A stretch of DNA of 64,000 nucleotides, from the IMG/VR virus record IMGVR_UViG_3300032268_000832, positions 186,001 through 250,000 of that record; one strand, written 5' to 3'. Under the pieces are notes generated by a model. That model saw only the letters and a program-made list of their open reading frames with translations. It searched no databases and was not told where the DNA came from. Below, in pieces: positions 9,587-52,990 of the stretch. Each line of letters starts with the position of its first letter. Position 1 is the stretch's first letter. A program made the translations under genes and the position numbers.

Positions 9587-9659
9587 TGCGGGGTAGAGCA
9601 GTAGGTAGCTCGCAAGGCTCATAACCTTGAGGTCGTCCGTTCGAGTCGGGCCCCCGCTA
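9587..9659 (+). tRNA. tRNA-Met(CAT), initiator-like
   Basis: cloverleaf, loop CTCATAA, 1:72 mismatch. Confidence 0.9.
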
Positions 9660-9717
9660 CTGGAGACTTTTTTGTACTTTTCAGTTTTCTGAGATATTTA
9701 TTATTAAAGAAATTGAA

Positions 9718-10377
9718 ATGGCAAGAAAAGAAAAAAACATACACTACATTTATAAAACAACGTGTAATATAACAGGACGATGGTACATCGGAATGCATAG
9801 CACGTATAACTTAGAAGATGGTTATATAGGTAGTGGTAAAACATTAAGACGTTCTATTAGAAAATACGGTAAAGAAAATCACACAAAAGAGATTCTAGAA
9901 TTTTTAGAAAATAGAGAAGAATTAGCTAAAAGAGAAAAAGAAATTGTTAATAAAGAATTAATTTCAGATTCCAAATGTATGAATTTGGCTCTTGGTGGTG
10001 AAGGTGGTGGTTTTATCAATGAAGAACATATGTTTAAATGTGTTAAAGCTGGTAGAAAAAAAACTGACGAAGTTTTAAAAGAAAAGTTCGGTGGTGATGA
10101 AAACTGGTTAAGTAGATTCAATTCTCATGTTAATAAAATAGCTTGGGAAAATGAAGAATACAGACAGAATAAATTAAAAAATCTAGATTGGACTGGTAAA
10201 AATCATGCTGAAGAATCTAAACGTTTAATCTCTGAAAAAAGAAAAGGTACTGGTATTGGTGAAACAAATAGTCAATACGGTACGTGTTGGATAACCAGAG
10301 ACGGTGCTAACAAAAAGATAAAAAAAGAAAACCTTGAAACTTATCTGAACGAAGGTTGGGTTAAGGGTAGAAAATAA
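9718..10377 (+). mobile_element. GIY-YIG homing endonuclease (Seg-like)
   Basis: YIYKTT...WYIGMH...YIGSG, NUMOD3-like GKNHAEESK; sits between two tRNA-Met genes. Confidence 0.85.
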
Positions 10378-10384
10378 AATACAT

Positions 10385-10472
10385 CGCGGAATGGTGGAAA
10401 TGGTAACATGCTAGGCTCATAACCTAGAGGAGCAGTAACACTGTGTTGTAGGTTCGAATCCTACTTCCGCAA
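10385..10472 (+). tRNA. tRNA-Met(CAT) with C1:A72 mismatch and long variable arm
   Basis: CTAGG-CTCATAA-CCTAG; variable hairpin GCAG-TAACA-CTGT. Confidence 0.8.
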
Positions 10473-10473
10473 C

Positions 10474-10528
10474 TAGAAGAATAGATTCAGCAATTTAATG
10501 TTTAGGATACAAAAAAGACTATTCTGTA
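10474..10528 (+). ncRNA. Y-RNA-like element copy 4 (minimal)
   Basis: AGAATAG / CTATTCT-G stem then ATTCAGCAA. Confidence 0.5.
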
Positions 10529-10597
10529 AAAATTAAAACCCATAGCAATATGGGTTTTTCTATTTAAACTAATAATTAATTTAAAACACAAAAACCA

Positions 10598-11275
10598 ATG
10601 GAAAAGATTAAACTTGAAATTCGTGGTGCAGAGGGCGGGACCGATGCAAAGCTATTGGTGTGTGAAATGAAAGACATTTACACCAAAGCAGCAAACATTA
10701 ATAACATCGGATGAATAACCGATGAAGAAAGAGATGGCTATGTTAGCATATGACTAACTGGTAAAAATGTCAAAAAAATCTTCGAAAACGAAATTGGTAA
10801 CCACAGGTGGCAAAGAGTCCCACCAACCGAACGTAAGGGAAGAGTCCACACTAGTTCAATAACAGTAGCACTTATGCAAGAAAACGATTACAAAGAAGTA
10901 GAGATACATCCAAGTGAATATCGTTTAGAAACAACTAGAGGGACTGGTCCAGGTGGGCAGCACCGCAACACTACTGACTCTACAGTAATTGTAACTCATG
11001 AAGCAACAGGTATTAAAGTTGTAAGAAACGGAAGATGCCAACATAAAAATAAAGAAGAAGCTCTTGTCGAATTAAAAAAACGAGTAAACGATTTTTATAG
11101 AAGCGGTCATGATAATGAAGCTAGTGAACAAAGAAAAGACCAAATCGGGAAGGGTGATAGAGGTGATAAACGAAGAACCTACAGAGTTAAAGATGGTGTT
11201 GTAATCGACCATATCACAGAAAAGACTGCAAATATAAAAGACATATACAGAGGTAAAATACAATTACTATCGTAA
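10598..11275 (+). CDS. class I peptide chain release factor (RF1-like PxT and GGQ; no domain 1) with in-frame TGA at 10712 and 10751
   Basis: manual translation [45 protein letters not shown], in frame with track ORF 10874 ([12 protein letters not shown]). Confidence 0.85.
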
Positions 11276-11359
11276 TAAAAAAAAAAGGGTGAAATTTTCA
11301 CCCTTTTTTATTTGTACATAAGTAAAAAAATCGGTATCTTTGTAAAAAAATCTTTAAAT

Positions 11360-11554
11360 ATGAAAAACAATCCTTTAATTATTGTTATTTTTTGGATATT
11401 ATGGGTGGTTGGGTTAGATTACATTTCCGAGTATGTGATTAGCAGACCAACAGACGGTTCTGTTCAATTCTTATCCTTAATCTTTGTATTAGCAATGACT
11501 GTATTGTTAGTTAAAAAGACTTATTTGTATATTATTAACAATTTAAATAAATAA
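11360..11554 (+). CDS. small two-helix membrane protein
   Basis: hydrophobic segments. Confidence 0.55.
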   Translation: MKNNPLIIVIFWILWVVGLDYISEYVISRPTDGSVQFLSLIFVLAMTVLLVKKTYLYIINNLNK

Positions 11555-11559
11555 AAACC

Positions 11560-12498
11560 ATGATTTCAACAATTATTATTGTTTTATCGCTAATAATGGC
11601 GATAGTAATCGCTCTTTCCACAAGGGAATCGAGCACAAAACAAACCAACTGGGGAACAGAATTTAATAGTGTTTGGTTAATTAAACCAATACTAATATTA
11701 GTTTTGGGCCTTACGTTAGGTTTTACTCAACCTTACAAATTAGATAGGGTCGATGCTGGTAACGTAGGTATCAAAGTCAACTTATCTGGTGATGCACGCG
11801 GTGTATCAAAGTATGAATACAAAACTGGTTGGGTAGTATTCAATACATGGACTGAACAACTTTATCAGTTTCCAGTTTTCCAACAAACTATTGGATATGA
11901 AAAACAACAAGTTATAACCAAAGGTGGTTTCCCAGCGACAATTCACCCAAGTTTTAACTATTCATTAAAAGCTGGTGCTGTTGGTGATATGTTCCAGAAT
12001 TTACGTTTGGATATTAAATCAGTAGAACAAGGTTGGTTACAAACAGCCATAGTTGGTGCTATTAATGACGTTGCTAATAAATGGGAGGTTGATAAAATCT
12101 TTAACGAGCGTGAACAATTTGAAGCTGCGATTAAAACTGAATGTAACAAGCGTTTATCTAAATGGTTTACCGTGTCACAATTAAGAACAAACATTGTTCC
12201 ACCACAATCCTTACAAGAAACAATTATAGCTAAAACTAGAGCGATTCAACAAGCACAAGCTGAGGACCAAAAAGCTCTTACAGCTGAAGCTGAAGCTAGA
12301 AAGAAAGTGGCTATTGCTAATGGTGATGCACAACAAACAATTATCGCGGCTAAAGCACAAGCAGAAGCTATGAGAATTAGAAAACAAGAAATCACTCCGT
12401 TGTATGTTGAATACTTAAAATGGATTGACATCAACCCTAACACACCAAGGGTACCACAAGTTGTGGGTAGCACAGCAGTGTTAAACCAACTTAAATAA
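11560..12498 (+). CDS. SPFH/band 7 (prohibitin-like) membrane protein
   Basis: N-terminal TM, VDAGNVGIKV, Ala/Glu/Gln-rich coiled coil. Confidence 0.85.
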   Translation: MISTIIIVLSLIMAIVIALSTRESSTKQTNWGTEFNSVWLIKPILILVLGLTLGFTQPYKLDRVDAGNVGIKVNLSGDARGVSKYEYKTGWVVFNTWTEQLYQFPVFQQTIGYEKQQVITKGGFPATIHPSFNYSLKAGAVGDMFQNLRLDIKSVEQGWLQTAIVGAINDVANKWEVDKIFNEREQFEAAIKTECNKRLSKWFTVSQLRTNIVPPQSLQETIIAKTRAIQQAQAEDQKALTAEAEARKKVAIANGDAQQTIIAAKAQAEAMRIRKQEITPLYVEYLKWIDINPNTPRVPQVVGSTAVLNQLK

Positions 12499-12551
12499 AC
12501 CAAGAACTCTACTGTGAAAGGTAGGGTTTCTTCTAATTTAAAAAAATAGAT

Positions 12552-13105: not shown

Positions 13106-13178
13106 GGTTCTATAGTATTAACGTGAATACGCCCGCCTCTAAAACGGAGAAATATCGGTTCGAGTCCGATTAGAACTA
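13106..13178 (+). tRNA. amber suppressor tRNA (anticodon CTA)
   Basis: acceptor GGTTCTA/TAGAACT, loop CTCTAAA, T arm ATCGG-TTCGAGT-CCGAT; anticodon stem only 3 bp. Confidence 0.7.
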
Positions 13179-13238
13179 CAAACACTTTACATTTTTTAGA
13201 AAAATGATATATTTATAAACAAAAAACAAATAGAACAA

Positions 13239-13845: not shown

Positions 13846-13915
13846 GGTTTGGTGACCGAGTGGTAGGTACAGTTCCGCAAGAACTGGCACGGTGGTTCGA
13901 ATCCACCCCAAACCT
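13846..13915 (+). tRNA. tRNA-Cys(GCA), atypical C33
   Basis: GGTTTGG/CCAAACC, CAGTT-CCGCAAG-AACTG, U73. Confidence 0.75.
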
Positions 13916-14049
13916 CTAATAATAATTTAAAACATAGAAATCATGATGTAGATTGCAAGACCACCGAATTAAGTTTATTATAACTTGGACATTATCTTGG
14001 ACAACTTGTCCAACTACTAACAATTATAATAAATTTAAAAAGAAAACAA

Positions 14050-17637: not shown

Positions 17638-17674
17638 TTTTTGTTTTTTAAAAATAAAATTGTATCTTTGCAAA

Positions 17675-18847
17675 ATGAAAACACAGATAAAACAAATACT
17701 TAGAGAAGGACTTACAATGGAAGAAAGAATTAAATTTGACTTCCAAATACCATCAGATATAATTGAAATCCAAAAGGTGTTCACCAAAAACGGATATAAA
17801 TTATATGTGGTTGGTGGAGCTGTGCGCGATGCCCTATTAGGAAAAACACCTAAGGATTTTGATTTAGCTACAGATGCTGTTCCTGACAAAGTAGAAGAAA
17901 TGATGCAAGATGCTGGGTTCAGAACCCTACCAACTGGTAAAGCTTTTGGTGTTATCAACGTATTCACTGACCAAGGAGAATATGAAGTAGCTACGTTTCG
18001 AAATGATATTGGTTCTGGTAGAAGACCAGACAGTGTTGAATTTACAAATATAGATGGTGATGTAAAAAGACGTGACCTTACAATCAACGCTTTGTTCTAT
18101 GATATAGACACAAAAGAAATAGTTGACCTTGTAGGTGGTGTAGACGACCTTAAAAACGGTGTTGTGAGAACTGTTGGTGCCCCAGAAGATAGATTTGGTG
18201 AAGATAGGCTTAGAATTCTAAGAGCGATTAGATTTGCTGGTAGATTTGGTTCTGATTTAGACCCAGCAACAGATATGGCATTACAAAAAGATGCAAGTCT
18301 TGAAGGTATTTCTGGTGAGCGTATTAGAGATGAGTTTATCAAAGGATTAATCTCAGCTAAGTCATTTAAAAAATACATGGAAATGTTAGATAAATATGAC
18401 TTATTCAAATGGGTGTTACCTAACATGTTATTGAATAAAAAATCATACATGAGAAACTCTGGTAAAGTTGACAATTACATTGTTGAATTGGCTAGTTTAT
18501 TAAAAGATAACGAAATTGATTTGTTAAGAAGAAAATTAAATGAATTGAAATACTCAGCAGACGAAATAAAAGCGATTGTGTTTTTAATTTCATTCTTAAA
18601 ATTGAGTGTTGATACCGCATACTTGTTGAAAAAAATGCAACAAACTGCTGGTGTTTCTGATAAACAAATTAGAGAATTTGGTGAGAAAGAAAACATACCA
18701 GAAAAATTGTTAAACGCTTTTGAACAATATAGACTTAGCGTTAGCGGACCAGAGGCTATGGAAAAATTTGATTTGAAACCAAGTCCTGAGTTGGGAAAAG
18801 CCATCCAAAAAATGGAAACAGCTAACTTTGAAAAATTATTAAAATAA
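17675..18847 (+). CDS. cca: CCA-adding tRNA nucleotidyltransferase
   Basis: VGGAVRD, DFDLAT, RRDLTINA, EDRLRILRAIRF, ERIRDE. Confidence 0.92.
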   Translation: MKTQIKQILREGLTMEERIKFDFQIPSDIIEIQKVFTKNGYKLYVVGGAVRDALLGKTPKDFDLATDAVPDKVEEMMQDAGFRTLPTGKAFGVINVFTDQGEYEVATFRNDIGSGRRPDSVEFTNIDGDVKRRDLTINALFYDIDTKEIVDLVGGVDDLKNGVVRTVGAPEDRFGEDRLRILRAIRFAGRFGSDLDPATDMALQKDASLEGISGERIRDEFIKGLISAKSFKKYMEMLDKYDLFKWVLPNMLLNKKSYMRNSGKVDNYIVELASLLKDNEIDLLRRKLNELKYSADEIKAIVFLISFLKLSVDTAYLLKKMQQTAGVSDKQIREFGEKENIPEKLLNAFEQYRLSVSGPEAMEKFDLKPSPELGKAIQKMETANFEKLLK

Positions 18848-21160: not shown

Positions 21161-22354
21161 ATGAATAGAAAAAATAAAATATCCATTATTAACAAAGCTA
21201 ATATTTTATTAGAAAATAAATTCATTGAAGAAAAAATTGGTAAAGACTCAATGATTAATGATTTAACAAACAAGGTTAATGATTTAACAAAAAGAGTAAA
21301 TTCAGGTGAAAATTTAGAAAATGAACTTAAAAATGTAATAAATAAGTTAATATTAGTTTTAAAAGACGATTCTATTGATGAAAATAAAATAGTTGAAGGG
21401 GTATTTGATTATGCTAAAATTGCTTTAATAAGTGGTTTGATGGCTTTAGGTATGACTAATACACAAGCACAATCAAAAATAGATAACTCAATTAATATAT
21501 CTTCTGTAAATAAAAGTGCTGAAGTTGAGTTATCGGATAATATAAAATTAGATGTTTCTAGAACTATTAACAGGTATCTTAATCAAGATAAAGGTGTTAA
21601 CCAAATAATTATTGAGATTGTTGGTAAAGCTTCCCTAGTAACACCACCAGCAGGTATGACAAATGAAGAATTAGCAACAAAAAGAGCGGAAAAAGCTAAA
21701 GAATATATTGAAGCTAAATATGGTAATAAAGTAATTGTGTCAAATATCACGACTAAAATAGGTGATACCAAATATATTAGTGGTTTGGATTCAAAAGATT
21801 CTCAAAAGTTTACGAAAGAACAAGGTGTTTCTATAAACATTGTTGCTAGTTTTGGTGGTAATTTAAATGGTTATTTTAATTCGATTATTATCTCCCCAGG
21901 TAAGAATCCAGATAATTTATTAGTATACAATTCTAGAGGTGAATTAATTACCAGTACTGGTTTTTTTGGTGATGGTGACAAATACCATCCACATTATTTG
22001 GTGTCAACAACGATGGGAATTGTTAAAGATAATGAATTGGGAAATAATACTAAACTTTTTGAAGGTACTTTAGATGAATTAAAAACTTTATTGACACAAC
22101 CCTTAGCGGATAACGACACTTATTATAATAATGCTTTAAAAATATTAATAGATAGGTATAATAACAATAAACCTATTTACTTATATGACTTACACACCCC
22201 AAAGACTTTAGATTTAAGTGATTTAGGTTTTGTAACGATTAAAGTTGTAACCAGTGATAAAGATACTGAGGGGAGTGTTATAATTAATGGTAGTAATAAT
22301 CAAAAAATTAAAGGAATTTACAACAAAAAAGGTTTTTCATTTTATGGTTTTTAA
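21161..22354 (+). CDS. protein with hydrophobic segment and OmpA-C-like region
   Basis: NEELATKRAEKAKEYI resembles the OmpA NxxLSxxRA motif; KANILLE N-terminus. Confidence 0.55.
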   Translation: MNRKNKISIINKANILLENKFIEEKIGKDSMINDLTNKVNDLTKRVNSGENLENELKNVINKLILVLKDDSIDENKIVEGVFDYAKIALISGLMALGMTNTQAQSKIDNSINISSVNKSAEVELSDNIKLDVSRTINRYLNQDKGVNQIIIEIVGKASLVTPPAGMTNEELATKRAEKAKEYIEAKYGNKVIVSNITTKIGDTKYISGLDSKDSQKFTKEQGVSINIVASFGGNLNGYFNSIIISPGKNPDNLLVYNSRGELITSTGFFGDGDKYHPHYLVSTTMGIVKDNELGNNTKLFEGTLDELKTLLTQPLADNDTYYNNALKILIDRYNNNKPIYLYDLHTPKTLDLSDLGFVTIKVVTSDKDTEGSVIINGSNNQKIKGIYNKKGFSFYGF

Positions 22355-22428
22355 AAAAAAACCATAAAACATTTTTTTATTAAAAAAAAATGTATATCTT
22401 TGCACTATTAATTTTAAAACAAAAAACC

Positions 22429-22785
22429 ATGAAAGTATTTTTTATTGCTTTTTTAATGTTTTCTTTATCGATTAAAGCCCAAAAACTAAAGAATGAATTA
22501 TTTACGTTTAATGTTGATTATACAAACAAAGAGTTTATAGTTAGGGTTGGTGATATAGATGAAAATAAATCACAAGTTGAAGTTGAAATTAAGTGTTCTA
22601 AAATAATTCTAGACTATAAAAAGGAAAAACATTTTGTGGAAGTTTTTAATATAAAACAACATGTTAATAATAGCAATGTTTTTTTTGGTGGTAAATTGAT
22701 TGAAGGTGAATATGTTATAACGTTAACATATGTTGAAAATGGTAAAAAAATAAAAAAAATAGAAAAAAAATTAATAAAAACTTGA
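22429..22785 (+). CDS. putative secreted protein
   Basis: signal peptide MKVFFIAFLMFSLSIKAQ. Confidence 0.6.
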   Translation: MKVFFIAFLMFSLSIKAQKLKNELFTFNVDYTNKEFIVRVGDIDENKSQVEVEIKCSKIILDYKKEKHFVEVFNIKQHVNNSNVFFGGKLIEGEYVITLTYVENGKKIKKIEKKLIKT

Positions 22786-22866
22786 CTTGTATTAAAATAG
22801 TTAGTATATTTGCATAACTTTTTAAAACAAGGATATATTTATAAACAAATACAAAAATAAAACAAA

Positions 22867-22968
22867 ATGAGAACAATTAACATACATATGATATCGATTT
22901 CGAATTGGAGACGCAATAGTCACCAAATGTCGGGTATGTCTAATTGCCAAGGTGGGACTGAAGTATAA
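22867..22968 (+). CDS. attenuator leader peptide 1 MRTINIHMISISNWRRNSHQMSGMSNCQGGTEV
   Basis: codons 4-19 are all read by tRNAs of the downstream cluster; contains antiterminator GTCGGGT (22929-22935). Confidence 0.85.
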   Translation: MRTINIHMISISNWRRNSHQMSGMSNCQGGTEV

Positions 22969-22993
22969 TTCAGAAACACATATAACAATACAC

Positions 22994-23027
22994 AACCCGA
23001 CTAGTTAAAAGCTTAGTCGGGTTTTTT
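22994..23027 (+). terminator. attenuator terminator 1
   Basis: AACCCGACTA..TAGTCGGGTT plus T-run. Confidence 0.85.
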
Positions 23028-23038
23028 ATTTTAAAACT

Positions 23039-23230: not shown

Positions 23231-23308
23231 AGCGTAATGGTTGACCGCTCTAGTCTTGAAAACTAGTCTCGCGAAAGTGGGTTGCAGGTTCGAGTCCTGT
23301 CTCCTCCG
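23221..23308 (+). tRNA. tRNA-Ser(TGA)
   Basis: GGAGGAG/CTCCTCC, CTAGT-CTTGAAA-ACTAG, long variable arm. Confidence 0.9.
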
Positions 23309-24027: not shown

Positions 24028-24100
24028 AGGCGTGTGGTGAAATTGGTTATCACGCAAGACTGATACTTTTGTATTTCGAGTTCGAGTCTCGACATGCCTA
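24028..24100 (+). tRNA. tRNA-Ile(GAT)
   Basis: CAAGA-CTGATAC-TTTTG. Confidence 0.85.
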
Positions 24101-24105
24101 CAAAC

Positions 24106-24189
24106 TGTGATGTGGATGAATGGTTTAGTCACCAGCCTGATACGCTGGGTGTTTATAACACAATGTGGGTTCGAGTCCCACCGTCACAA
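24106..24189 (+). tRNA. tRNA-Ile(GAT) with long variable arm
   Basis: CCAGC-CTGATAC-GCTGG; variable hairpin GTGTT-TAT-AACAC. Confidence 0.8.
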
Positions 24190-24191
24190 CT

Positions 24192-24425: not shown

Positions 24426-24499
24426 GGTCCTCTGGCGCAATTGGTTAGCGCAGCGCGCTCATAACGCGACGGTTTCGGGTTCGAGTCCCGAGGGGACCA
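24426..24499 (+). tRNA. tRNA(CAT), elongator Met or Ile2
   Basis: GCGCG-CTCATAA-CGCGA, paired 1-72. Confidence 0.85.
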
Positions 24500-24604
24500 C
24501 ACCCTATCAAATGGTGTAACCACGGGTAAAAACAGCAACGCTGGCGAATGGACCAGAGGCGCACCGTAATTGTGGTACTCGGTGTATTGATAAAAATATA
24601 AAAT

Positions 24605-24690
24605 TCTGGTTTGGCCGAGTGGACGATGGCAGCAGACTGTTAATCTGCTAGGGTACACCCTCAACGTAGGTTCGAATCCTACAGCCAGAG
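24605..24690 (+). tRNA. tRNA-Asn(GTT) with long variable arm
   Basis: GCAGA-CTGTTAA-TCTGC; variable hairpin AGGGT-AC-ACCCT. Confidence 0.8.
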
Positions 24691-24757
24691 CGAAAATTTT
24701 TTTGTTAATCTATTGACTTTTTGTTCGAATTTATTATATTTATAATAAAAACAAATT

Positions 24758-25312
24758 ATGAAAGAAAAAATATTAGAATTAAGAAAAAAAGGTTTAAAAA
24801 TTGATGAAATTGTTAAAGAATTGGGTTGTGCTAAAAGCACCGTATCATATCACATTAACAATAATGGTTTAGGTGGTAAGGTTATAACTGACAGTTTAAT
24901 TTCTAAAATTAATGAGTATTATTTAACTCATAGTAAAGCTGAAACAGCTAAACATTTCGGGATTGGAGCTTCAACTGTAACTAAATATACTGAAAATAAA
25001 AGAGTCTATTTAAGCGAAGAAGAGAGGAAAGAAAAAGCTGTTAAAGCCGTTGTAAAAAGAAGACAAAAAGTCAAAGAGATGGCAGTTGAATACAAAGGCG
25101 GTTCATGTCAGAGATGTGGTTATAATAAATACATAGGTGCTTTAGAGTTTCACCATATGGACCCAAATGAAAAAGATTTTTTAATAAGCAGAAAAGGTCA
25201 TTGTACATCTTGGGAAAAAATAAAAAAAGAATTAGATAAATGTATTTTAGTTTGTGCTAATTGTCACAGAGAAGTACACGAAGAAGAAAGAAATAACAAG
25301 GGGCTGTCGTAG
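24758..25312 (+). mobile_element. HTH-HNH homing endonuclease
   Basis: CQRCGY..LEFHH..CILVCANCHREVH; sits between two tRNA-Asn genes. Confidence 0.85.
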
Positions 25313-25373
25313 CAGCGGTCTAATACGGAGGACTGTTAATCCTTTTACATGGGTTCGAATCCCATCGGCCCCG
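25300..25373 (+). tRNA. tRNA-Asn(GTT)
   Basis: GAGGA-CTGTTAA-TCCTT. Confidence 0.85.
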
Positions 25374-25387
25374 CAAAATAAAAGAAG

Positions 25388-27761: not shown

Positions 27762-28700
27762 ATGAAAAAAGAAATAAGAACAATATTAAGAGAAGGTATG
27801 TTAAAGAATTCATTAGGGGTTGCGGTTTCAAGACCAGACCAAGTGCTTATCGTGATGCGTGGTATACCAGGCTCGGGTAAATCAACAAAAGCCAAAGAAC
27901 TAGTAGGTGAAGGAGTAATCCATTCAACTGATGCTGTTATAGAGTCACAAGGTGATTACAACAAATTCTTTCAATTAATGTTTGAATCTAAAGACTTTAC
28001 ACCATTGTCAAGAGCTCACTCTACCAATTTAAAAAACGTTGTTGGTTCGTTAAAAGAAGGTGTTTCACCAGTTATCCTAGATAACACAAACATCAAACAA
28101 AACGAATCAAAGGCCGCTATTAAGGCTGCTTTGGAAATGGGGTTGGCTGACAACAACATAAAGTTTGTGGATATAGGTACAGCTGGTCTTACAGCTGAGC
28201 AATTAGCTGAAAGAAACACTCATGGTGTACCGCTTGAAAAAATACAATCAATGATTGAATCACACAAGGGTCAAGGTCCATTAACGCTTAAAAGCGTTTT
28301 AGAATCGAAAGACATGTACAAAGAATCAAACATTTTGTATTCTGCTGTTGTATTGGATGGTGGGTCTAGAGCAGCTTTGTTGTCAAGAATTGAGGGTATG
28401 ATACCTGATGGTTGGAAAGTAATTGCGCACCACATGACTATAGTGTTTGGTAAACCAGTACCAAACCAAGAAGATTTAGGTAAAGAAGTTACTTTGTATG
28501 TTGAAGCTATAGGGATTAGCGATATGGCTATGGCTGTTAGGGTTGAAGGTTATCCATCAACCAATGCGATTCCACATATAACAATTGCGATAAACCCAGA
28601 TGGTGGAAAACCAGTGATGTCGAATGATATCACCAAATGGCAAAAAATAAAGAACTTTGCCATTAAGGGTAGAGTTACTGAAATTAAGAAAGGGTCGTAA
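27762..28700 (+). CDS. polynucleotide kinase-like P-loop fused to 2H phosphoesterase (RNA end healing)
   Basis: GIPGSGKST, ILDNTN, RNTHGVP; HMT and HIT 2H motifs. Confidence 0.85.
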   Translation: MKKEIRTILREGMLKNSLGVAVSRPDQVLIVMRGIPGSGKSTKAKELVGEGVIHSTDAVIESQGDYNKFFQLMFESKDFTPLSRAHSTNLKNVVGSLKEGVSPVILDNTNIKQNESKAAIKAALEMGLADNNIKFVDIGTAGLTAEQLAERNTHGVPLEKIQSMIESHKGQGPLTLKSVLESKDMYKESNILYSAVVLDGGSRAALLSRIEGMIPDGWKVIAHHMTIVFGKPVPNQEDLGKEVTLYVEAIGISDMAMAVRVEGYPSTNAIPHITIAINPDGGKPVMSNDITKWQKIKNFAIKGRVTEIKKGS

Positions 28701-29887: not shown

Positions 29888-31012
29888 ATGTTAAAAATAC
29901 AAAAATTTATAAAAGAAAACGGTTTTGAAAAAGCTGTTAAAGAGTTTCAATTAAAAACTCGTGAATACGAACACAAAGTGTTATTGAAATATGACCAATT
30001 AGTGTCACCAACTATTATGTCGAACATAGAAGTTCAAGAATGTAGAGGTCTTATCCTTGAAAAAGGTACATGGGATGTTATGTCGTTGGCTTTCACAAAA
30101 TTCTTCAATGCTGAAGAAGGAAACGCTGCTAAAATAGATTGGAACACAGCTCACGTTTTAGAGAAACTTGACGGTACTCTTATACAAGTGTATTGGGACT
30201 GGGTAAACGAAGAATGGTATGCTGGTACTACTGGTACAGCTGAGGGTGAGGGTGAAGTTAACAACAAAATGGGAACTACTTTTAACTCATTGTTTTGGGA
30301 CACTGTAACAAAACAATATGCGTTGAATACATGTATGTTCGACAAAAACCATGTATATGTGTTTGAGTTAACAACTCCATATAATATTGTTGTAAAACCA
30401 CACGGAGAATCATCAGCAACTTTGTTGACTGTTAGAAACCGTGTTACATTACAAGAGGTTTCTTGGAAAAACTTAACTATGATTGCAGAATCGTTAAGAG
30501 TACCATTGGTTAAAAGATTTGACTTGAATGCTAAAGATGTGGGTACTTTGTTACGTACATTTGAAGGTATGCCATGGTCAGAAGAAGGTTACGTTGTTGT
30601 AGACGCTAATTTTAACCGTATCAAGATAAAAAACCCAGCTTACGTTGCGGTTCACCACTTGAAAGGTAAAACAGCTGAACACAACATCATAACTATCGTT
30701 AAATCTAACGAGATAGAAGAATTCGCTTCAACTTTCCCAGAAAGAAAAGATGAATTGCTTAGACTTAAAGATAACTACGATAAATTAACTGACAAGTTAA
30801 ATGATGTTTGGGTTGAGTTAAGTGCTCGTAAACCAAAAAACATAACCAAAGAAGAAAAGAAAAGATACGCTGCGGCTGTATTTGAAGTTTGTGGTAAACA
30901 CGACTTAAAACAATTCACTGGATTGTATTTCGGATTGGTTGATGGTAAAGTTGGTTCCGTAGAAGACTTCATTGTAAACTACGATGACAAATTATTATAC
31001 AAAATGCTCTAA
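29888..31012 (+). CDS. RNA ligase, T4 Rnl1-like
   Basis: ECRGLIL, KFFN, EKLDGTLI, FEL, EGYVV, KIK. Confidence 0.85.
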   Translation: MLKIQKFIKENGFEKAVKEFQLKTREYEHKVLLKYDQLVSPTIMSNIEVQECRGLILEKGTWDVMSLAFTKFFNAEEGNAAKIDWNTAHVLEKLDGTLIQVYWDWVNEEWYAGTTGTAEGEGEVNNKMGTTFNSLFWDTVTKQYALNTCMFDKNHVYVFELTTPYNIVVKPHGESSATLLTVRNRVTLQEVSWKNLTMIAESLRVPLVKRFDLNAKDVGTLLRTFEGMPWSEEGYVVVDANFNRIKIKNPAYVAVHHLKGKTAEHNIITIVKSNEIEEFASTFPERKDELLRLKDNYDKLTDKLNDVWVELSARKPKNITKEEKKRYAAAVFEVCGKHDLKQFTGLYFGLVDGKVGSVEDFIVNYDDKLLYKML

Positions 31013-35134: not shown

Positions 35135-36187
35135 ATGAAAAAAATGATTAAATTTCCGTCTATCGAACAATTCAGAAGCGTTGTAGCTACTGTTCTTAGA
35201 AAATATAATTTTGTTGGTCTTGATGAGAATGGTGATGCGATTTACGACACCACAAAACCAAAACCAACGCTTACCTTCAAGGGCACTGTGAAACTTCACG
35301 GAACCAATGCTGGTGTTTCTTTCAAATACGGTTATGATAACACTAGTGAGTATTGGGTACAATCTCGTGAAAACATTATCACACCAGAAAAAGACAATGC
35401 TGGTTTTGCTTTCTTTGTTGAATCACATAAAGAAGCGTTTAAAAAATTTGCTAGTCAAATTGATTCGTTGGGGATGTTTGATGTCCGTCATAACATCGTT
35501 ACGATTTATGGTGAATGGGCTGGTGGTAACATTCAGAAGGGTGTTGGTATTTCAAATCTACCAAAATCATTCTTTATCTTTGGTGTTAAAGTAACTCCGA
35601 TTACTGAAACTGAAGAAGAAGCTAGACAAAAACCAGCTTATTGGATTCCTTCACACTTTTTGAAAAGTCCTGAGGATAACATTTACAATATCGAAGATTT
35701 CCAAACTTGGGAAATCGATATTGACTTTAACATGCCACAATTGGTTCAAAACAAATTGTCAGAACTTACACTAGCTGTTGAAGAAGAATGTCCAGTTGCT
35801 AAGGCTTTTGGGTTCTCTGGAATCGGTGAAGGTATTGTTTGGTCAACAACGCTTAACGGAAACGTACACCGCTTCAAGGTGAAGGGCGAACGCCACTCTA
35901 GTTCAAAGGTTAAAACACTTGCAGCTGTAGACACTGAAAAATTGGAATCAATCCAAAGCTTTGTTGAATACGCAGTAACTGAAAGTCGTTTCAATCAAGC
36001 ACTTGAAAATGTATTCCCTAACGAAGAACCAATTGAAAACAAAAAATTGGGTGATGTAATTCGTTGGGTTGTAAACGACGTAATCAAAGAGGAAATGGAC
36101 ACCATGACTGATAACAAAATCGAACCAAAAGATGTGAACAAATACATCTCTTCTAAGGTTAGAGATATGTTCTTTAAGTTGGTGTAA
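35135..36187 (+). CDS. RNA ligase, Rnl2-like
   Basis: VKLHGTN, IYGEW, GEGIVW, FKVK. Confidence 0.8.
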   Translation: MKKMIKFPSIEQFRSVVATVLRKYNFVGLDENGDAIYDTTKPKPTLTFKGTVKLHGTNAGVSFKYGYDNTSEYWVQSRENIITPEKDNAGFAFFVESHKEAFKKFASQIDSLGMFDVRHNIVTIYGEWAGGNIQKGVGISNLPKSFFIFGVKVTPITETEEEARQKPAYWIPSHFLKSPEDNIYNIEDFQTWEIDIDFNMPQLVQNKLSELTLAVEEECPVAKAFGFSGIGEGIVWSTTLNGNVHRFKVKGERHSSSKVKTLAAVDTEKLESIQSFVEYAVTESRFNQALENVFPNEEPIENKKLGDVIRWVVNDVIKEEMDTMTDNKIEPKDVNKYISSKVRDMFFKLV

Positions 36188-38320: not shown

Positions 38321-39610
38321 ATGATAACTAAAGAAAACGGCTTAAAATACGCTAAATTAATTCACGTATCGGTTGATAACGGAAAAACAGATAATAGCAA
38401 CAAAGTCTATATAATGGAAGAGCTTGCTGACGGTAGAATCAAATGTGAATACGGTAGAGTTGGTAAAAGTCTCACTACTGAGTATAAAGATAGTTCTAAA
38501 TGGAGTAGTGTTTACAAACAAAAGACTGGTGCTAGTAAAGGTTACACTGATGTAACAGAGTTATTAGCAGAACCAGTAGTTGATAATTCAAACGGTGGTT
38601 CACAAAACAACACTGTTGAAGCGATAAAAGATGCTATGGTTAAGAAATTAGTTCAAGACCTTATGGCATACGCAAATAAATCTATTCAAAAGAATTATAA
38701 AGTTACTCAAGACGCTGTTTCTGAACAACAAGTTGAAGCAGCACAAGAGGTTTTGTCTAAAGTTACAGCTATGCTTAAAGTTGGTGGTGACCTTAAAGAA
38801 GTGAACAACGAATTGTTAAGACTTTTTACCGTTATTCCTAGAAAAATGGATAACGTTAAAAATCACTTGGTTCAAGGTCTTGATAACGATGACGAATTGG
38901 AAAAAGCTCAAAGATTGTTGGGTGAAGAACAAAGTGCGCTGGATACCATGGCTGGTCAGGTTAAACTTATCAAACAACAAAAACAAACTATTGAAACCAC
39001 TGGTGAAGAAATGTCAGATATTGACATCCTTACTCAAATGGGTCTTAAGATTGAAGTTGAGAAAGATAGCGAAACACTTAGCCTTATCACCAAATTATTG
39101 GGTGATAATTCGTCAAAAGCCAAAAAGATTTTCAAAGTTGTTAATATTGCCACACAAGCCAAATTTGATAACCATTTTAAAACAGCTAAAGTTAAAAAGA
39201 AAAGACTTTACTGGCATGGTTCTCGAAACGAGAACTGGTTTAACATTATCCAGACTGGTCTTATGATTAGACCTTCTGGTGCTGTTTACACTGGTTCTAT
39301 GTTCGGTGATGGTGTGTATTTCGCTAACAAGAGTCAAAAATCATTGGGGTATAGTTCACTATCAGGTTCACATTGGACTAGAGGTAACTCTCAAGTAGGT
39401 TTCTTGGCATTGTTCGATGTACATTTAGGAAACGAGAAACACATTCACAAACATGATTCATCATGTTATAGTTTGAGTTACTCTAACATCCAAAAGGATG
39501 GTTTTGATAGCGTATACGCTCATGGTGGTGCTGACCTTAGAAATGACGAGTTCATTATCTACAATCCAGTACAATGTACAATTTCTCACTTAATACAAAT
39601 GGAACACTAA
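38321..39610 (+). CDS. WGR-domain poly(ADP-ribose) polymerase
   Basis: YGRVG; regulatory helices (FTVIPR); WHGSR, MFGDGVYFA, NDEFIIY triad. Confidence 0.9.
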   Translation: MITKENGLKYAKLIHVSVDNGKTDNSNKVYIMEELADGRIKCEYGRVGKSLTTEYKDSSKWSSVYKQKTGASKGYTDVTELLAEPVVDNSNGGSQNNTVEAIKDAMVKKLVQDLMAYANKSIQKNYKVTQDAVSEQQVEAAQEVLSKVTAMLKVGGDLKEVNNELLRLFTVIPRKMDNVKNHLVQGLDNDDELEKAQRLLGEEQSALDTMAGQVKLIKQQKQTIETTGEEMSDIDILTQMGLKIEVEKDSETLSLITKLLGDNSSKAKKIFKVVNIATQAKFDNHFKTAKVKKKRLYWHGSRNENWFNIIQTGLMIRPSGAVYTGSMFGDGVYFANKSQKSLGYSSLSGSHWTRGNSQVGFLALFDVHLGNEKHIHKHDSSCYSLSYSNIQKDGFDSVYAHGGADLRNDEFIIYNPVQCTISHLIQMEH

Positions 39611-46618: not shown

Positions 46619-48511
46619 TTAATATTTAGCAATTTTATCAGTTTCAATTTTACTTATAGTATTTAATTTAGCAATATATAACCCACTAGCTAAAGAAGAT
46701 AAGTTAGTAGAATAAACATATTGACCCTTAGCCATATATTTGTTTATTATAGTAAATACTTTTCTTCCCGCTACATCGAACAAACATAGTTCAGTTTCAC
46801 CGCTTTTATCTACTTTAAAATTTACAAATACATCACCATTTGTTGGGTTAGGATAAACAATCATATCACCAGTGATAAATGTTTGATTACCAATTTTATT
46901 GATTTCAACAACACCATTGGTAGGTACAATATTCATATCTGAAGAAGTTTCGTTTCCTACAAATTTTCTAGATGTGTATAATGGACTAGAGTTCCATTCG
47001 CTTTGTGGTGATTTAGCTGTAAAATATAATGTGAAAAGAGTTTCCCCGTCTTCAACAAAGTTATTATTACTAGCATCATAACCACCCCACTCAATAACAT
47101 CATCATGAGGGTTAACAAAACTTAACCATGACATTGCTTTTTGTGAGTTTCTTACTTCATTAAATTCTAATAAATTAGAATCATAATATAAAGCTAATTG
47201 TAGAGAACCTAATTTATTATTACCAGTAAGTGTTTTAACAGGTATTTCAACCATATTACCTTCACTCACAGTTAAACTAGGTAAATTAATTTCAACTGTT
47301 GGTAAAGGTCTATCATACTCAACTTTTTCATCAATAACATAACTAGAAGCATTAGCTGGGTTATTAATTTCAATAGGTGTTAAACGAGCCATATGATAAC
47401 CAGTTCTATTTGCGTCACCAGTAACCATAACATAATATGTTATACTAGTTTCACCAAAAGGTATTTCATATGTAAAGTCAGTAACACCAGCAATACTTGA
47501 AGTCATGTTTGTGTTAGGTGAACCCATAACAGTAGTGTATTCACTAGATGTAAAGAATTTAATATTGTTTACACCATTTGGCCATACGCTAAATCTACCA
47601 GAGATTTTACCAAAAACACCATAAGCATCAGATATTGTAATGTTATTGTTACCATTTACGTCAGCAGCGTAAAAATCAAAATCACTTGGTTGTCCAGTAC
47701 CTAACACCCATTGATTAATTTGCTGTGCATCCGCAACTGAAATAACGTTACCAACATCCATAGTACCACCGTTTACAACTAATCTTATATCATAAAACGT
47801 AGCGTCAATTTGCTCATTAATAGCATAAGAACCGTTTAAATCAGTAAGATAATTGTTAACTAAAGTCCATGGACCGCCAGTTTTAAGTTTTTTCTCTAAT
47901 GAGAATGGTAAATTTTTAGCTGGAGTATCGTTTACGTTCACAAAATTTGCTGTGTAAGTAAAAGTTTGTCTTAAGAAGTTACCACCATAATTGTGAAGTG
48001 ATAACACTAAGTCATTACCAGCTTGGTCAGCACCCATTTGAGGAAAAGTTTGAACACCAGTCCATGTTAAGTTTCCAATAGACGGCAAAGAATCAAAAGT
48101 TCCAGCAGCAACATGGGTAAAAGCAATATTAAACAAATTACCGATTGGTAATGTGTATGTACTATCACTACCTGTGTATACTACAGTTATAGTTACGTAA
48201 CCATTAGCATTGTTATCAACAAATTGTAAATCTAAATTGGTTGTAGAACCAATTAAAGATACAGCTGCTGATGAAAATGCTGTTTTATCATAAAACACTC
48301 TAAATTGAAGACCTGTAACTAACGAAGTAGTTGTATTAGCATAGGTTAATTTAGTGTTAGTAACACCTTGTACACTAGTACCAACGGTATAGTTCGTGTC
48401 AATTAAAACCCAAACACCGTTAGACGGTGCAACAGGTTCTTGTGCGAAAGTTGGTGTTATGAAACTAAATAATAGTAACGCAACACTAACTAATTTTTTA
48501 ATGTTTTTCAT
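46619..48511 (-). CDS. secreted cohesin/dockerin-like protein with type IX secretion C-terminal sorting domain
   Basis: signal peptide; DVNGNNNITISD; VYPNPT..FDVAGR..LASGLYIAKL. Confidence 0.8.
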   Translation of the reverse strand: MKNIKKLVSVALLLFSFITPTFAQEPVAPSNGVWVLIDTNYTVGTSVQGVTNTKLTYANTTTSLVTGLQFRVFYDKTAFSSAAVSLIGSTTNLDLQFVDNNANGYVTITVVYTGSDSTYTLPIGNLFNIAFTHVAAGTFDSLPSIGNLTWTGVQTFPQMGADQAGNDLVLSLHNYGGNFLRQTFTYTANFVNVNDTPAKNLPFSLEKKLKTGGPWTLVNNYLTDLNGSYAINEQIDATFYDIRLVVNGGTMDVGNVISVADAQQINQWVLGTGQPSDFDFYAADVNGNNNITISDAYGVFGKISGRFSVWPNGVNNIKFFTSSEYTTVMGSPNTNMTSSIAGVTDFTYEIPFGETSITYYVMVTGDANRTGYHMARLTPIEINNPANASSYVIDEKVEYDRPLPTVEINLPSLTVSEGNMVEIPVKTLTGNNKLGSLQLALYYDSNLLEFNEVRNSQKAMSWLSFVNPHDDVIEWGGYDASNNNFVEDGETLFTLYFTAKSPQSEWNSSPLYTSRKFVGNETSSDMNIVPTNGVVEINKIGNQTFITGDMIVYPNPTNGDVFVNFKVDKSGETELCLFDVAGRKVFTIINKYMAKGQYVYSTNLSSLASGLYIAKLNTISKIETDKIAKY

Positions 48512-49168: not shown

Positions 49169-50392
49169 ATGAGCAAACAACTAACACACGAGTTTCTAGT
49201 AGAAAATGGGTTAATACTTTTTGAAACCATAATTGGTTCTCAAGCATATGGTACCCAAACACCTACTAGTGATGTAGACAAAAAATTCGTATACATATTA
49301 CCTATGGATTATATCTTGGGTACTGGATATGTTGAACAAATAAATGTAAATAAAGACTACACAGGTTGGGAACTTAGACGTTTCCTAGAATTAATGGAAA
49401 CAAACAACCCAACGGTTCTAGAACTTTTAAACAGCCCAGGAGACTGTATAATCAGCAAACACCCTTTGTTTGACCTAATCCTTGCACATAAGGAGGATTT
49501 CATAACAAAACTATGTAAAAATAGCTTTGGTGGATACGCTAGACAACAAATTGTTAAAGCTAAAGGTCTTAACAAGAAACAAAACTGGGAAAAAGACAAA
49601 GTAACTAGAAAAGACTTGTTAGATTTCTGTTATGTTATTCAAGGTGATAAATCAATCCCATGGAGAGCGTGGAATGCTAACAAATATGATGAAAAATTTG
49701 TTGGTGCTGTGAATATCCCAAATGCGAGAGATACCTACGCTTTATTTTATGACAGCGTTGCTGAAATGCTTCATTCTGAAAATACTGATGAAGAACTTAG
49801 AGAGACTTATAAAGAAGCACTGAGAAAAGCTGGTAAATCAATGGGTATGGGTTATAAAGGACTTATCAATACTGGTCATGAAGATGAAGATGGTAAGATT
49901 AACTACGGTATCTCAAATCAATTACGTCTTTCTAGCGTACCTAAAGGTGAGAAAGTTATTGCAACAATAGTGTATAACAAAGATGGTTATTCAGAACATT
50001 GTAAAGACTATAAAGAGTATCAAGAATGGCTTGAAAACCGTAACGAAGCTCGTTATGTTGAAACACAAGAACATGGGCAAAGAATTGATGGTAAGAATAT
50101 GATGCACTGTATGCGTCTTATCAGAATGGCAACAGAAATTGGTCAAGGTAAAGGGATTCAAGTAAGAAGAGAAGATAGAGAATATCTATTATCAATTCGT
50201 AGAGGTGAACTAGACTTAGATAAATTAATCGAAGAAGCGGATAATGCAATTAAAAATATGGATGAAGTTTTTGATAATTCCACTCTACCTGACAGAGTCC
50301 CTAAGGGTTTGGTAAATGCTCTTTTAGTTACTATCAGAAGAGAATTTTATGATTTGCCAATATCGGCAACAACACTTGAAAAAAGACTTTAA
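49169..50392 (+). CDS. Pol beta-like nucleotidyltransferase (YcgL/RlaP-like)
   Basis: GSQAYGTQTPTSDVD, NPTVLE, KNMMHCMRL. Confidence 0.8.
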   Translation: MSKQLTHEFLVENGLILFETIIGSQAYGTQTPTSDVDKKFVYILPMDYILGTGYVEQINVNKDYTGWELRRFLELMETNNPTVLELLNSPGDCIISKHPLFDLILAHKEDFITKLCKNSFGGYARQQIVKAKGLNKKQNWEKDKVTRKDLLDFCYVIQGDKSIPWRAWNANKYDEKFVGAVNIPNARDTYALFYDSVAEMLHSENTDEELRETYKEALRKAGKSMGMGYKGLINTGHEDEDGKINYGISNQLRLSSVPKGEKVIATIVYNKDGYSEHCKDYKEYQEWLENRNEARYVETQEHGQRIDGKNMMHCMRLIRMATEIGQGKGIQVRREDREYLLSIRRGELDLDKLIEEADNAIKNMDEVFDNSTLPDRVPKGLVNALLVTIRREFYDLPISATTLEKRL

Positions 50393-52063: not shown

Positions 52064-52093
52064 ACTCATCTGAATAAGATAAGTATCTCTCAC

Positions 52094-52125
52094 AAAAAGC
52101 CCATCCTAACCAGATGGGTTTTTTT
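52094..52125 (+). terminator. attenuator terminator 2
   Basis: AAAAAGCCCATC-CTAACCA-GATGGGTTTTTTT. Confidence 0.85.
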
Positions 52126-52138
52126 ATTGAATAATAAT

Positions 52139-52219
52139 GCCGTGGTTCCTGAGTGGTCAAAGGGGGCGGACTGCAAATCCGCTGCGAAAGCTTCGTGGGT
52201 TCGAATCCCTCTCACGGCT
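52139..52219 (+). tRNA. tRNA-Cys(GCA) with extended variable arm
   Basis: GCGGA-CTGCAAA-TCCGC; variable TGCGAAAGCTTC; U73. Confidence 0.85.
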
Positions 52220-52240
52220 CAATGATAAACTGAAAAAAAA

Positions 52241-52621
52241 ATGGAAGGTAAAGATTACTTAGTTGGTTCATTTAGAACCAAAAACGGTGCTCAAGTTAAC
52301 GTTTATAGAAATATTAAAAATATGGAAAAGAATGAAATTAAAAAGGACTTGTATAAGTCAAAGAATCTGGCTAAATTTAGCCACTATGTAAACGGAAACC
52401 TGTATTATAAGGTAGACGTGATGGACGGAACTTATCAGTTCCCAATAAAAACAGTACAGAAATCATATGTAATGGATACTAGACAAGTTGAAAAGATTCC
52501 AACACTAGTATTAGCAGAAGATTTAGGAACAACAAGTTTTGACGCTGAAATAAAGGGTTCTGAATTGATTAGATGGATTGAAAAAGCTATCGATAATGAA
52601 GATTTTATAAAAGTAGGGTAA
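52241..52621 (+). CDS. hypothetical protein
   Basis: ORF track. Confidence 0.65.
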   Translation: MEGKDYLVGSFRTKNGAQVNVYRNIKNMEKNEIKKDLYKSKNLAKFSHYVNGNLYYKVDVMDGTYQFPIKTVQKSYVMDTRQVEKIPTLVLAEDLGTTSFDAEIKGSELIRWIEKAIDNEDFIKVG

Positions 52622-52634
52622 AACCTACTTAAAT

Positions 52635-52723
52635 GGGACTATGGTGTAGTTGGTTAAACATCCCATCCTTACAAGATGGAGACGAGAAGTATAACGCTGG
52701 TTCGAATCCAGCTAGTCCTACCA
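52635..52723 (+). tRNA. tRNA-Val(TAC) with 16-nt variable region
   Basis: CCATC-CTTACAA-GATGG; encoded CCA. Confidence 0.8.
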
Positions 52724-52731
52724 AAATAAAT

Positions 52732-52818
52732 GGCCTTGTGGCGAAACTGGCAGTACGCACTAGACTTAAAATCTAGGGTCCCGAAGGGGGCGTGTGGGTT
52801 CGACTCCCACCAAGGCTA
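52732..52818 (+). tRNA. tRNA-Leu(TAA)
   Basis: CTAGA-CTTAAAA-TCTAG, long variable arm. Confidence 0.9.
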
Positions 52819-52826
52819 CACAATAT

Positions 52827-52909
52827 GCGGATATGGTGGAATGGTAGACACACTAGCCTTAGAAGCTAGGGCTCATTTGGGCATGCGAGTTCGAGTCTCG
52901 CTATCCGTA
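52827..52909 (+). tRNA. tRNA-Leu(TAG)
   Basis: CTAGC-CTTAGAA-GCTAG, long variable arm. Confidence 0.9.
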
Positions 52910-52915
52910 CAAATC

Positions 52916-52990
52916 GCATCTGTAACTCAGTGGTTCAGTAGTGCTTCCTTTACACGGAAGAAGTCGGGGGTTCGAATCCCTCCAGATGCA
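52916..52990 (+). tRNA. tRNA-Val(TAC)
   Basis: CTTCC-TTTACAC-GGAAG. Confidence 0.9.

Follow-up and report, generated by a model that had tools for sequence, protein, structure and literature searches.

Class II-type variable arms on tRNAs of class I anticodon families in a clade of huge phages

We describe an unusual set of transfer RNA (tRNA) genes in a 64,000-nucleotide stretch of viral DNA, bases 186001-250000 of a single 306,463-bp contig (IMG/VR record IMGVR_UViG_3300032268_000832); this whole stretch is called the window below. In bacterial-type systems, long variable arms are limited to the tRNAs for Leu, Ser, Tyr and Sec. Here, tRNAs for Met, Ile, Asn, Cys and Val in the window, and one for Pro just past its end, have long variable regions as well. 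They make up 6 of the 38 tRNAs in the genome and recur in independent assemblies, which is far more than chance, and the long-arm feature is systematic in a phage clade, not an oddity. Judged from their sequences, most of these long tRNAs appear to be cognate tRNAs that have gained an arm, with a few Leu- or Tyr-like bodies among them.

Long-arm tRNAs of the window genome

An earlier sequence-only reading had pointed to five tRNAs of the window with variable regions of 12-20 nt. ARAGORN located all five, each on the plus strand, and they score 46.7-57.3 bits against the Rfam tRNA family RF00005, above its gathering threshold of 29 bits. Counting the variable region from position 44 to position 48, the tRNA(CAU) at 10385..10473 (57.3 bits) has 20 nt (10428-10447) that form a hairpin of 4-5 bp. 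The tRNA-Ile(GAU) at 24106..24190 (52.5 bits) has 16 nt (24149-24164), folded as a 5-bp hairpin with a 3-nt tail. Likewise, the 17 nt (24649-24665) of tRNA-Asn(GUU) at 24605..24691 (55.6 bits) form a 4-bp hairpin with a 4-nt tail, and the 12 nt (52183-52194) of tRNA-Cys(GCA) at 52139..52220 (46.7 bits) form a short hairpin with a GAAA loop and a 3-nt tail. The fifth, tRNA-Val(UAC) at 52635..52723 (56.4 bits), has a variable region of 16 nt (52680-52695), carries A73 and has its CCA end encoded in the gene. A variable region of at least 10 nt with its own helix, as in class II tRNAs, is thereby found in Met, Ile, Asn and Cys, and the Val region is unpaired. The sequence of the Val region is kept in L084/G004, and a similar one is found in L024.

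The sixth long tRNA, Pro(UGG), lies at 251254-251349 of the genome (window-relative 65254) and likewise scores above the RF00005 threshold. It is 96 nt long, with an 8-bp arm and 1-nt flanks. In the ARAGORN cloverleaves, all long copies have acceptor and T stems of 7 and 5 bp, the GG of the D-loop and a T loop of the GTTCGA type.

Short partners and their arrangement

The sequence-only reading had also assigned each of the five a canonical partner with the same anticodon. Short tRNAs of the right anticodon are indeed present in every case, all on the plus strand: CAU at 9587..9660 (Rfam, 59.5 bits), Ile(GAU) at 24028..24101, Asn(GUU) at 25300..25374, Cys(GCA) at 13846..13916 and Val(UAC) at 52916..52991. 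ARAGORN calls all five, and Rfam also finds the Ile, Asn and Val copies. The long Ile copy starts 4 nt downstream of its short partner. A short Pro(UGG) of 77 nt at 251625-251701 of the genome (window-relative 65625) accompanies the long one. Both Pro(UGG) tRNAs of this genome carry A37 and several relatives carry G37; tRNA-Pro normally has G37 (m1G).

Two of these pairs are not what had been supposed. The short Cys at 13846 is not canonical, since it has C33, whereas U33 is universal in tRNAs; it gave no RF00005 match at E<=1, and the C33 loop is also found in G004 (L160:13608). The Met pair is not a simple elongator and its backup, because the tRNA at 9587 is of the initiator type (U1xU72, A11:U24 and two G:C pairs adjoining the anticodon loop), a third CAU tRNA at 24426..24500 (plus strand; ARAGORN and Rfam) is Ile2-like, and the long copy at 10385 also has a 1x72 mismatch. 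The tRNA at 24426 has C4:G69 and C5:G68, the pairs expected of tRNA-Ile2 as determinants for TilS, and judged by these known determinants it is likely a tRNA-Ile2 that is read after lysidine modification.

One further observation concerns the long Cys tRNA. A highly covered metatranscriptome contig from another organism (run X17) matches its bases 52146-52179 with 3 differences in 34 nt and then diverges; beyond the match, it resembles a Tyr-type arm by eye. This suggests that a bacterial tRNA of the same waters shares a very similar D arm and anticodon stem with the long Cys.

Recurrence across the phage clade

We gathered 151 related IMG/VR loci with the RlaP gene, a 780-aa gene and an SPFH gene adjoining the tRNA arrays as queries, and we added the tRNA regions of four complete relatives (288-369 kb) to the comparison. 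These four relatives and the window's own record, which is 86% complete by CheckV estimate, make up a set of five genomes that together contain 34 long class I-type tRNAs. For example, G003 has long-arm tRNAs for 12 amino acids (Asn, Asp, Cys, Gln, Gly, His, Ile, Lys, Met, Thr, Trp and Val) and G004 for seven (Asp, His, Ile, Met, Pro, Thr and Val), while those of G005 are for Asn, Cys, His and Ile and those of G001 for Gln, His, Ile and Lys (two copies). A published huge phage in GenBank, LR745206.1 (634 kb), has long tRNAs for Lys (three copies), Asn and Gln.

We also scanned IMG/VR with a pattern that combines the Ile(GAU) loop, a long spacer and the T arm. The scan returned at least 21 further distinct long Ile(GAU) tRNAs in at least 22 loci, and these loci also contain many long Asn, His, Cys, Met, Thr, Pro and Val tRNAs. 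Among all distinct sequences collected, long forms are frequent for Ile (a count inflated by the choice of loci in the pattern scan), Asn, His, Met, Pro, Thr, Cys, Val and Glu, and nearly lacking for Ala (1/41), Phe (1/64) and Arg (1/68). Long Asn tRNAs alone number 15 distinct sequences among the relatives.

In the five genomes, a short partner with the same anticodon accompanies 27 of the 34 long tRNAs. This partner is the immediate neighbour in 18 of the 34, compared to 4.2 expected, and none of 2000 shuffles reached 18. Nonetheless, long copies are not always the second copy: the complete genome G001 encodes no short counterpart for its long Gln, His, Ile and Lys(CUU) tRNAs. Accordingly, long forms appear able to stand alone, since they are the only phage copy for four anticodons in this genome.

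The switch also runs in the other direction. Relatives hold Leu tRNAs with variable loops of only 4-6 nt, so the arm has been both gained and lost within the clade. A family with the Leu anticodons UAA, UAG, AAG and CAA, a variable loop of 5-6 nt and A73 (L013:13345, L009:13227, L023:13531, L004:14087 and L101:4942) represents this reverse class switch; it has no member in the window's own genome.

The arm is a conserved helix

Given 15 long Ile(GAU) sequences, RNAalifold predicts the class II cloverleaf unaided. In this alignment, 98% of the cells are paired and changes on both sides are found in 19 of the 24 pairs; in the arm itself, all four pairs covary and 96.6% are paired. None of 500 shuffles reaches these values, and pairing drops to 36-45% when the partners are slid by 1-3 columns. 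Both-side changes are likewise seen in all three arm pairs of four long Cys tRNAs, and compensatory arm changes occur in the Pro, Met and Asp orthologues. For example, orthologues of Met 10385 (in L108, L109, L110 and L113) show a compensatory change from A-U to G-C.

The long variable regions fold as well as genuine class II arms do. Their mean folding z is -3.07, compared to -2.95 for the Leu, Ser and Tyr arms of the clade, and at least 3 bp form in 85% of them versus 82% of those arms. The hairpins are stable and often closed by GNRA loops; no arm sequence motif is common to different amino-acid families.

Sequence conservation points in the same direction. Between G000 and G004, the orthologous bodies are 0.95-0.97 identical for Met and 0.96 for Val, and differ by one base for Ile, while the proteins of the two genomes are about 76-92% identical. 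Purifying selection on the long tRNA genes is therefore clear.

Identity marks follow the anticodon family

Long tRNAs and short tRNAs of the same anticodon share the discriminator base N73 in 47 of the 49 distinct long sequences, and the agreement holds in 17 of the 18 cases where the base is not A (Cys, Thr and Gly with U; His with C; Asn, Asp and Trp with G). The long Ile and Val keep A73 and the long Cys keeps U73. First-pair marks are kept in the long copies too: C1:G72 with A73 in Pro, G-1:C73 in His, U1:A72 with G73 in Asn (also in the window copy at 24605), U1:A72 in Gln and A1:U72 in Trp.

Bacterial initiators are marked by a 1x72 mismatch, G2:C71, C3:G70, A73, A11:U24 and three G:C pairs above the anticodon loop. 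Of these, the acceptor-end features (the 1x72 mismatch, G2:C71 and C3:G70) are present in the long CAU tRNAs. Met 10385 has an initiator-like acceptor end (C1xA72, G2:C71, C3:G70 and A73) and two of the G:C pairs, but U11:A24. The long CAU tRNAs of L024, G003 and L174 have full initiator-type bodies.

In class II tRNAs, the orientation of the arm depends on the bases at its foot and is read by the three class II synthetases. The modal geometry of the long arms (0-1 unpaired base, 3-4 bp with stems of 3-5 bp overall, a tetraloop and a 3-nt tail) matches that of the clade's tRNA-Tyr, whereas the tail is 2 nt in Leu and 0-1 nt with a stem of 5-6 bp in Ser. This geometry speaks against serine or leucine identity as far as sequence comparison can tell. 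TyrRS needs both A73 and the GUA anticodon, and every long copy is without A73, the GUA anticodon, or both. Among long copies, G73 or U73 is confined to those whose cognate family has G or U at this position.

No synthetase of Pfam families PF00133, PF00587 or PF00152 (the Ile/Val, Pro and Asn enzymes) was found in the 86%-complete record, MetRS- and CysRS-specific families not having been searched, so host enzymes would have to charge the long tRNAs. Because N73 and the 1:72 pair follow the isoacceptor family and the searched synthetase families were not found, the long tRNAs are most likely charged by host synthetases with their cognate amino acid and used in translation.

Origin of the tRNA bodies

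For 50 long sequences we compared the bodies over about 60 alignable positions. The nearest body is a short tRNA of the same anticodon in 15 sequences and a Leu, Ser or Tyr tRNA in another 15, the rest being ambiguous; nearest-neighbour scores of 0.6-0.7 are near background and speak neither for nor against a single origin. The same-anticodon short tRNA is nearest for Cys, Glu, some Val and some initiators (0.73-0.84). Several long copies are clearly canonical class I bodies with an insertion, among them the G003 Val (0.84 to a short Val), the initiators of G003 and L024 (0.80), Cys and Glu tRNAs, and the Asn tRNAs of L194, L219 and L174. In the syntenic Cys slot across relatives, variable regions of 4, 5, 6, 12, 14, 15 and 16 nt are found.

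These comparisons bear on the suggestion that the long tRNAs are anticodon-switched class II bodies that could be mischarged. It is mostly unsupported, given the N73 match in nearly all sequences, the first-pair marks that are kept and the class I bodies with an insertion. Even for Met 10385 a simple anticodon switch is not established, because the homologous tRNA at the same position in L111 and G005 has a variable loop of 3 nt. The minority with Leu- or Tyr-near bodies, Met 10385 included, might nevertheless be mischarged. Taken together, the sequences suggest that the same long-arm architecture arose many times independently, and selection for the arm itself is suggested because it did so repeatedly from mixed bodies.

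Different from this family are tRNAs with clearly Ser-like bodies (G73 and an arm of 6-7 bp) and a GAU anticodon, found in other viral contigs (L236:2117, L182:1422 and L239:5230). Unlike the window's family, these are candidates for true missense tRNAs.

Source genome and probable host

The genome has a G+C content of 31%, and 28 of the 38 tRNAs called by ARAGORN lie inside the window. DNA of this phage is found in lake-water metagenomes of at least 14 studies. In GenBank, the closest records are those of two uncultured phages (635 kb and 642 kb), and the Prevotella Lak phages come next; both uncultured records presumably belong to the genomes of Al-Shayeb et al. 2020. In that study, genomes of ~635-642 kb cluster in the Mahaphage clade, whose members are predicted to infect Bacteroidetes (PMC7162821). 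One window protein (46619-48511) has a type IX secretion sorting domain. The jumbo phage of the window probably infects Bacteroidota, and the carriers of the long-arm tRNAs are probably a clade of Mahaphage-like freshwater huge phages with Bacteroidota hosts.

Among cultured relatives, a DNA search of a phage collection with window positions 22000-27000 matched the HNH gene only. The RlaP of Tenacibaculum phage PTm1 is 36% identical to that of the window and has no tRNA nearby.

Gene context and other unusual tRNAs

The window can be described as a tRNA maintenance island. All on the plus strand, it encodes a CCA-adding enzyme (tRNA nucleotidyltransferase; 17660..18847; Pfam PolyA_pol 2.3e-37, PolyA_pol_RNAbd 8.4e-09), a Pnkp-like healing enzyme that combines a polynucleotide kinase with a cyclic phosphodiesterase (27762..28700; AAA_33 2e-09, tRNA_lig_CPD 3.4e-06), an RNA ligase of the T4 Rnl1 family (29888..31012; RNA_lig_T4_1 3e-16), a second RNA ligase (35135..36187; RNA_ligase PF09414 1.9e-11) and the RNA-repair-pathway nucleotidyltransferase RlaP (49169..50392; RlaP 3.8e-22). 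RlaP lies directly upstream of the Cys/Val/Leu tRNA array and is syntenic with tRNA arrays in 80 related loci. Genes for a Ro-like DUF2828/DUF7788 protein (2418-3872), DnaJ (5658-6689), ClpP (7478-8173), the transfer-messenger RNA, tmRNA (8292-8645) and a PARP-domain protein (38321-39610) form a proteostasis and RNA quality-control cluster that adjoins the tRNA arrays. Two endonuclease genes sit inside the tRNA array, one for endonuclease VII (23379-23813) and one of the HNH type (24758-25312) between both Asn tRNAs. As for proteins that could bind the arm, no tRNA_bind or S4 domain protein turned up in the domain search. A few metatranscriptome pieces of 151-206 nt match the 780-aa gene and may be phage mRNA or DNA carry-over.

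Other tRNAs of this genome are unusual in different ways. Two paralogous tRNA-like genes (window 58432-58508 and genome 286683-286759) have an 8-nt anticodon loop, called 'ttcg' and 'gagg' by ARAGORN. The first scores 54.2 bits against the Rfam tRNA family and is conserved in L001, L002, L034 and L081-L083. Both genes could encode decoders of quadruplets or frameshifts, or serve some other purpose.

An amber-reading tRNA with a CUA anticodon (13106-13179) is conserved in L102-L113. In 233 long open reading frames (ORFs) of the genome, TAG is the stop 13 times and TAA 204 times, and code 11 fits. We considered an alternative genetic code and rejected it, as code-11 ORFs of at least 100 aa span 89% of the genome and reading TAG or TGA as sense adds only 2%.

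Finally, the tRNA at 53866-53941 is called 'SeC(tca)' by ARAGORN, which reflects an ambiguity of register: near-identical homologues in L002 and L084 with the same loop are called Glu(ttc). This comparison favours an odd UUC tRNA over an opal suppressor.

Possible functions of the long arm

We put at about even the chance that the long copies are genuine selected tRNAs with anticodon-matched identity (Met/fMet, Ile, Asn, Cys, Val, Pro) that have acquired a class II arm and serve as a structurally distinct spare set. The arm they acquire would have the geometry of the Tyr arm and leave identity unchanged, and this clade of huge phages would carry a second tRNA set of distinct structure beside the canonical copies. 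Host synthetases would charge the long copies with the cognate amino acid for use in translation. The benefit would be redundancy through a different shape: the protruding arm may make the long copies poor substrates for host tRNA-directed nucleases or toxins, or for a phage-induced tRNA turnover, that are geared to class I tRNAs, and phage genes could still be translated once canonical tRNAs have been cut. Phages classically counter anticodon nucleases with healing and sealing enzymes, and those encoded nearby would address the same threat.

By analogy, evasion of tRNA-targeting nucleases is plausible, and a shape-diversified spare set that host nucleases and toxins handle poorly is the most likely function. 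We favour it because of the nearby healing and sealing genes and because phage tRNAs are known to escape such defences: those of T5 and T4 escape the tRNA-targeting systems retron Eco7, PARIS and PrrC (PMC11555353). The sequence-only reading had proposed, as one of two possibilities, that the long tRNAs are structurally altered backups that resist tRNases. That they are conserved, covarying and mostly found beside a canonical copy of the same anticodon agrees with their being altered backups; 'backup' is not always the right word, because four long tRNAs of G001 are the only phage copy.

Several points weigh against the spare-set reading, and some of them favour deliberate or tolerated mischarging, in which SerRS (or LeuRS or TyrRS for copies with A73) would charge the long tRNAs, so that codons for Met, Ile, Asn, Cys, Val or Pro would be read as Ser, Leu or Tyr in a phage-driven mistranslation or recoding like that of allo-tRNAs and nev-tRNAs. 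The body of Met 10385 is nearest to Leu(UAA) (0.77), and Leu- or Tyr-like bodies are also found in the Ile family (0.72, Leu) and in some Lys (one at 0.76, Tyr) and Cys tRNAs. The long Pro arm, with its 8 bp and 1-nt flanks, has a Ser-like geometry, and a few unrelated viral contigs hold the Ser-like GAU tRNAs described above. A long arm together with G73 or U73 is a serine identity mark in allo-tRNAs (PMC5389517), and nematode tRNAs with Gly or Ile anticodons and a long arm (nev-tRNAs) accept Leu and no other amino acid (PMC3333845). The 86%-complete record could lack a phage synthetase, or one could belong to the MetRS- and CysRS-specific families outside our search. The variable region of Val 52635 has no predicted pairing, whereas those of the other four long tRNAs of the window form hairpins. 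The metatranscriptome contigs that match the tRNA array are short and represent conserved parts of the tRNAs of other organisms, with nothing specific for the long tRNAs, and a nuclease blocked by a variable arm is itself hypothetical. We nonetheless find mischarging unlikely. N73 and the 1:72 pair track the anticodon family and not Ser, Leu or Tyr in 47 of 49 sequences, the arms differ in geometry from those of Ser and Leu tRNAs in the clade, an insertion into a canonical class I body is seen in many long copies, and the stems are 7/5, not 8/4 or 9/3. In addition, G001 encodes no tRNA for Ile, His or Gln other than a long copy.

The same arm could also serve outside decoding or define a separate system, and we hold both ideas to be unlikely. 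In the former, the long tRNAs would be decoys or sponges for host tRNA nucleases and toxins, or the arm would be a handle by which a phage factor (repair, CCA-adding or the Ro-like DUF2828) marks phage tRNAs. The Pnkp-like, Rnl1, RNA ligase, CCA-adding, RlaP and DUF2828/DUF7788 genes are co-located with the arrays and the arm geometry is uniform over many amino-acid families, as such a role would have it; yet the long tRNAs retain the anticodon loops, identity marks, acceptor ends and T loops of functional tRNAs, a decoy needs no amino-acid-specific discriminators, and neither an arm motif across families nor a tRNA_bind or S4 domain protein was found. In the latter, the arm would be the self-mark of a phage-private orthogonal translation channel: a phage nuclease or repair factor would remove or ignore host class I tRNAs and spare or service the phage's own, which would blunt host immunity. 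In the richest genomes, the long set comprises elongators for a dozen amino acids as well as an initiator of class II shape.

It is very unlikely that the added helix is simply a structural stabiliser that offsets missing host modifications or cold lake water and plays no part in host conflict. While the lake-water habitat and the stable, often GNRA-capped hairpins would suit it, it leaves unexplained why long copies have canonical neighbours, why long forms are nearly absent for Ala, Phe and Arg, and why the arm was lost from Leu tRNAs of relatives. We consider neutral decay highly improbable. Phage tRNA arrays are highly redundant and fluid, odd tRNAs such as the short Cys 13846 and those with 8-nt anticodon loops are common, and redundant duplicates might tolerate insertions in the variable loop, which would make the long copies drifting or dead genes. 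Decay is at odds with compensatory changes in all helices including the arm, with orthologues that stay 96-100% identical while proteins are about 76-92% identical, with an architecture that arose repeatedly and independently, and with the sole-copy long tRNAs of one complete genome.

Relation to known tRNA systems

We found no description of long-arm class I tRNAs in phages in the open-access literature; on this subject, the huge-phage paper says no more than that the tRNAs of phages and their hosts differ (PMC7162821). The closest known group are the allo-tRNAs or (8/4) tRNAs, which have 8/4 or 9/3 stems, D arms like that of tRNA-Sec and serine (or alanine) identity and function in missense or nonsense suppression (Mukai et al. 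2017, PMC5389517). Like them, the tRNAs described here are bacterial or phage tRNAs mined from metagenomes, lie in tRNA clusters and combine a long arm with many non-Ser, non-Leu anticodons. Unlike them, they have a short Tyr-type arm and canonical copies alongside, and because of their 7/5 stems and own-family identity marks (N73 and the 1:72 pair) the long-arm phage tRNAs are not allo-tRNAs.

The nev-tRNAs of nematodes, which derive from tRNA-Leu (Hamashima et al. 2012, PMC3333845), and other eukaryotic V-arm tRNAs share with our set a class II shape combined with anticodons of class I families (Gly and Ile in the nev-tRNAs). In contrast, the phage tRNAs seem mostly cognate-derived or converged, with Leu-like bodies in a minority only; they cover at least 15 anticodon families and include the initiator type. 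tRNA-Tyr and mitochondrial tRNA-Ser provide precedents for a switch of class with identity kept, as they show that evolution can add or remove a long arm (Giege and Eriani 2023, PMC9976931). In these cases the arm was lost long ago across whole lineages and from one or two families, whereas here repeated gains in many families, together with losses in Leu, occur in one clade, with both forms in the same genome.

Finally, the long tRNAs resemble the phage tRNAs that escape host defences in being extra copies that differ from those of the host, in their linkage to Pnkp/Rnl repair genes and, putatively, in keeping translation going while host tRNAs are cut. The known escape variants have base changes in the anticodon loop or stem; here a whole added helix switches the structural class, and escape is putative.

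The rule that long arms belong to Leu, Ser, Tyr and Sec only is thus broken for at least 15 anticodon families, apparently without a change of identity. If cognate charging holds, many synthetases, the formylase, EF-Tu and the ribosome would tolerate a Tyr-type arm on any tRNA, and this tolerance could be useful in the design of orthogonal or tagged tRNAs. Where annotation pipelines label these genes as oddities or pseudogenes, they would then overlook a conserved feature of published huge-phage genomes. Phages may also vary the shape of their tRNAs, and not only the sequence of the anticodon loop, against tRNA-targeting immunity.

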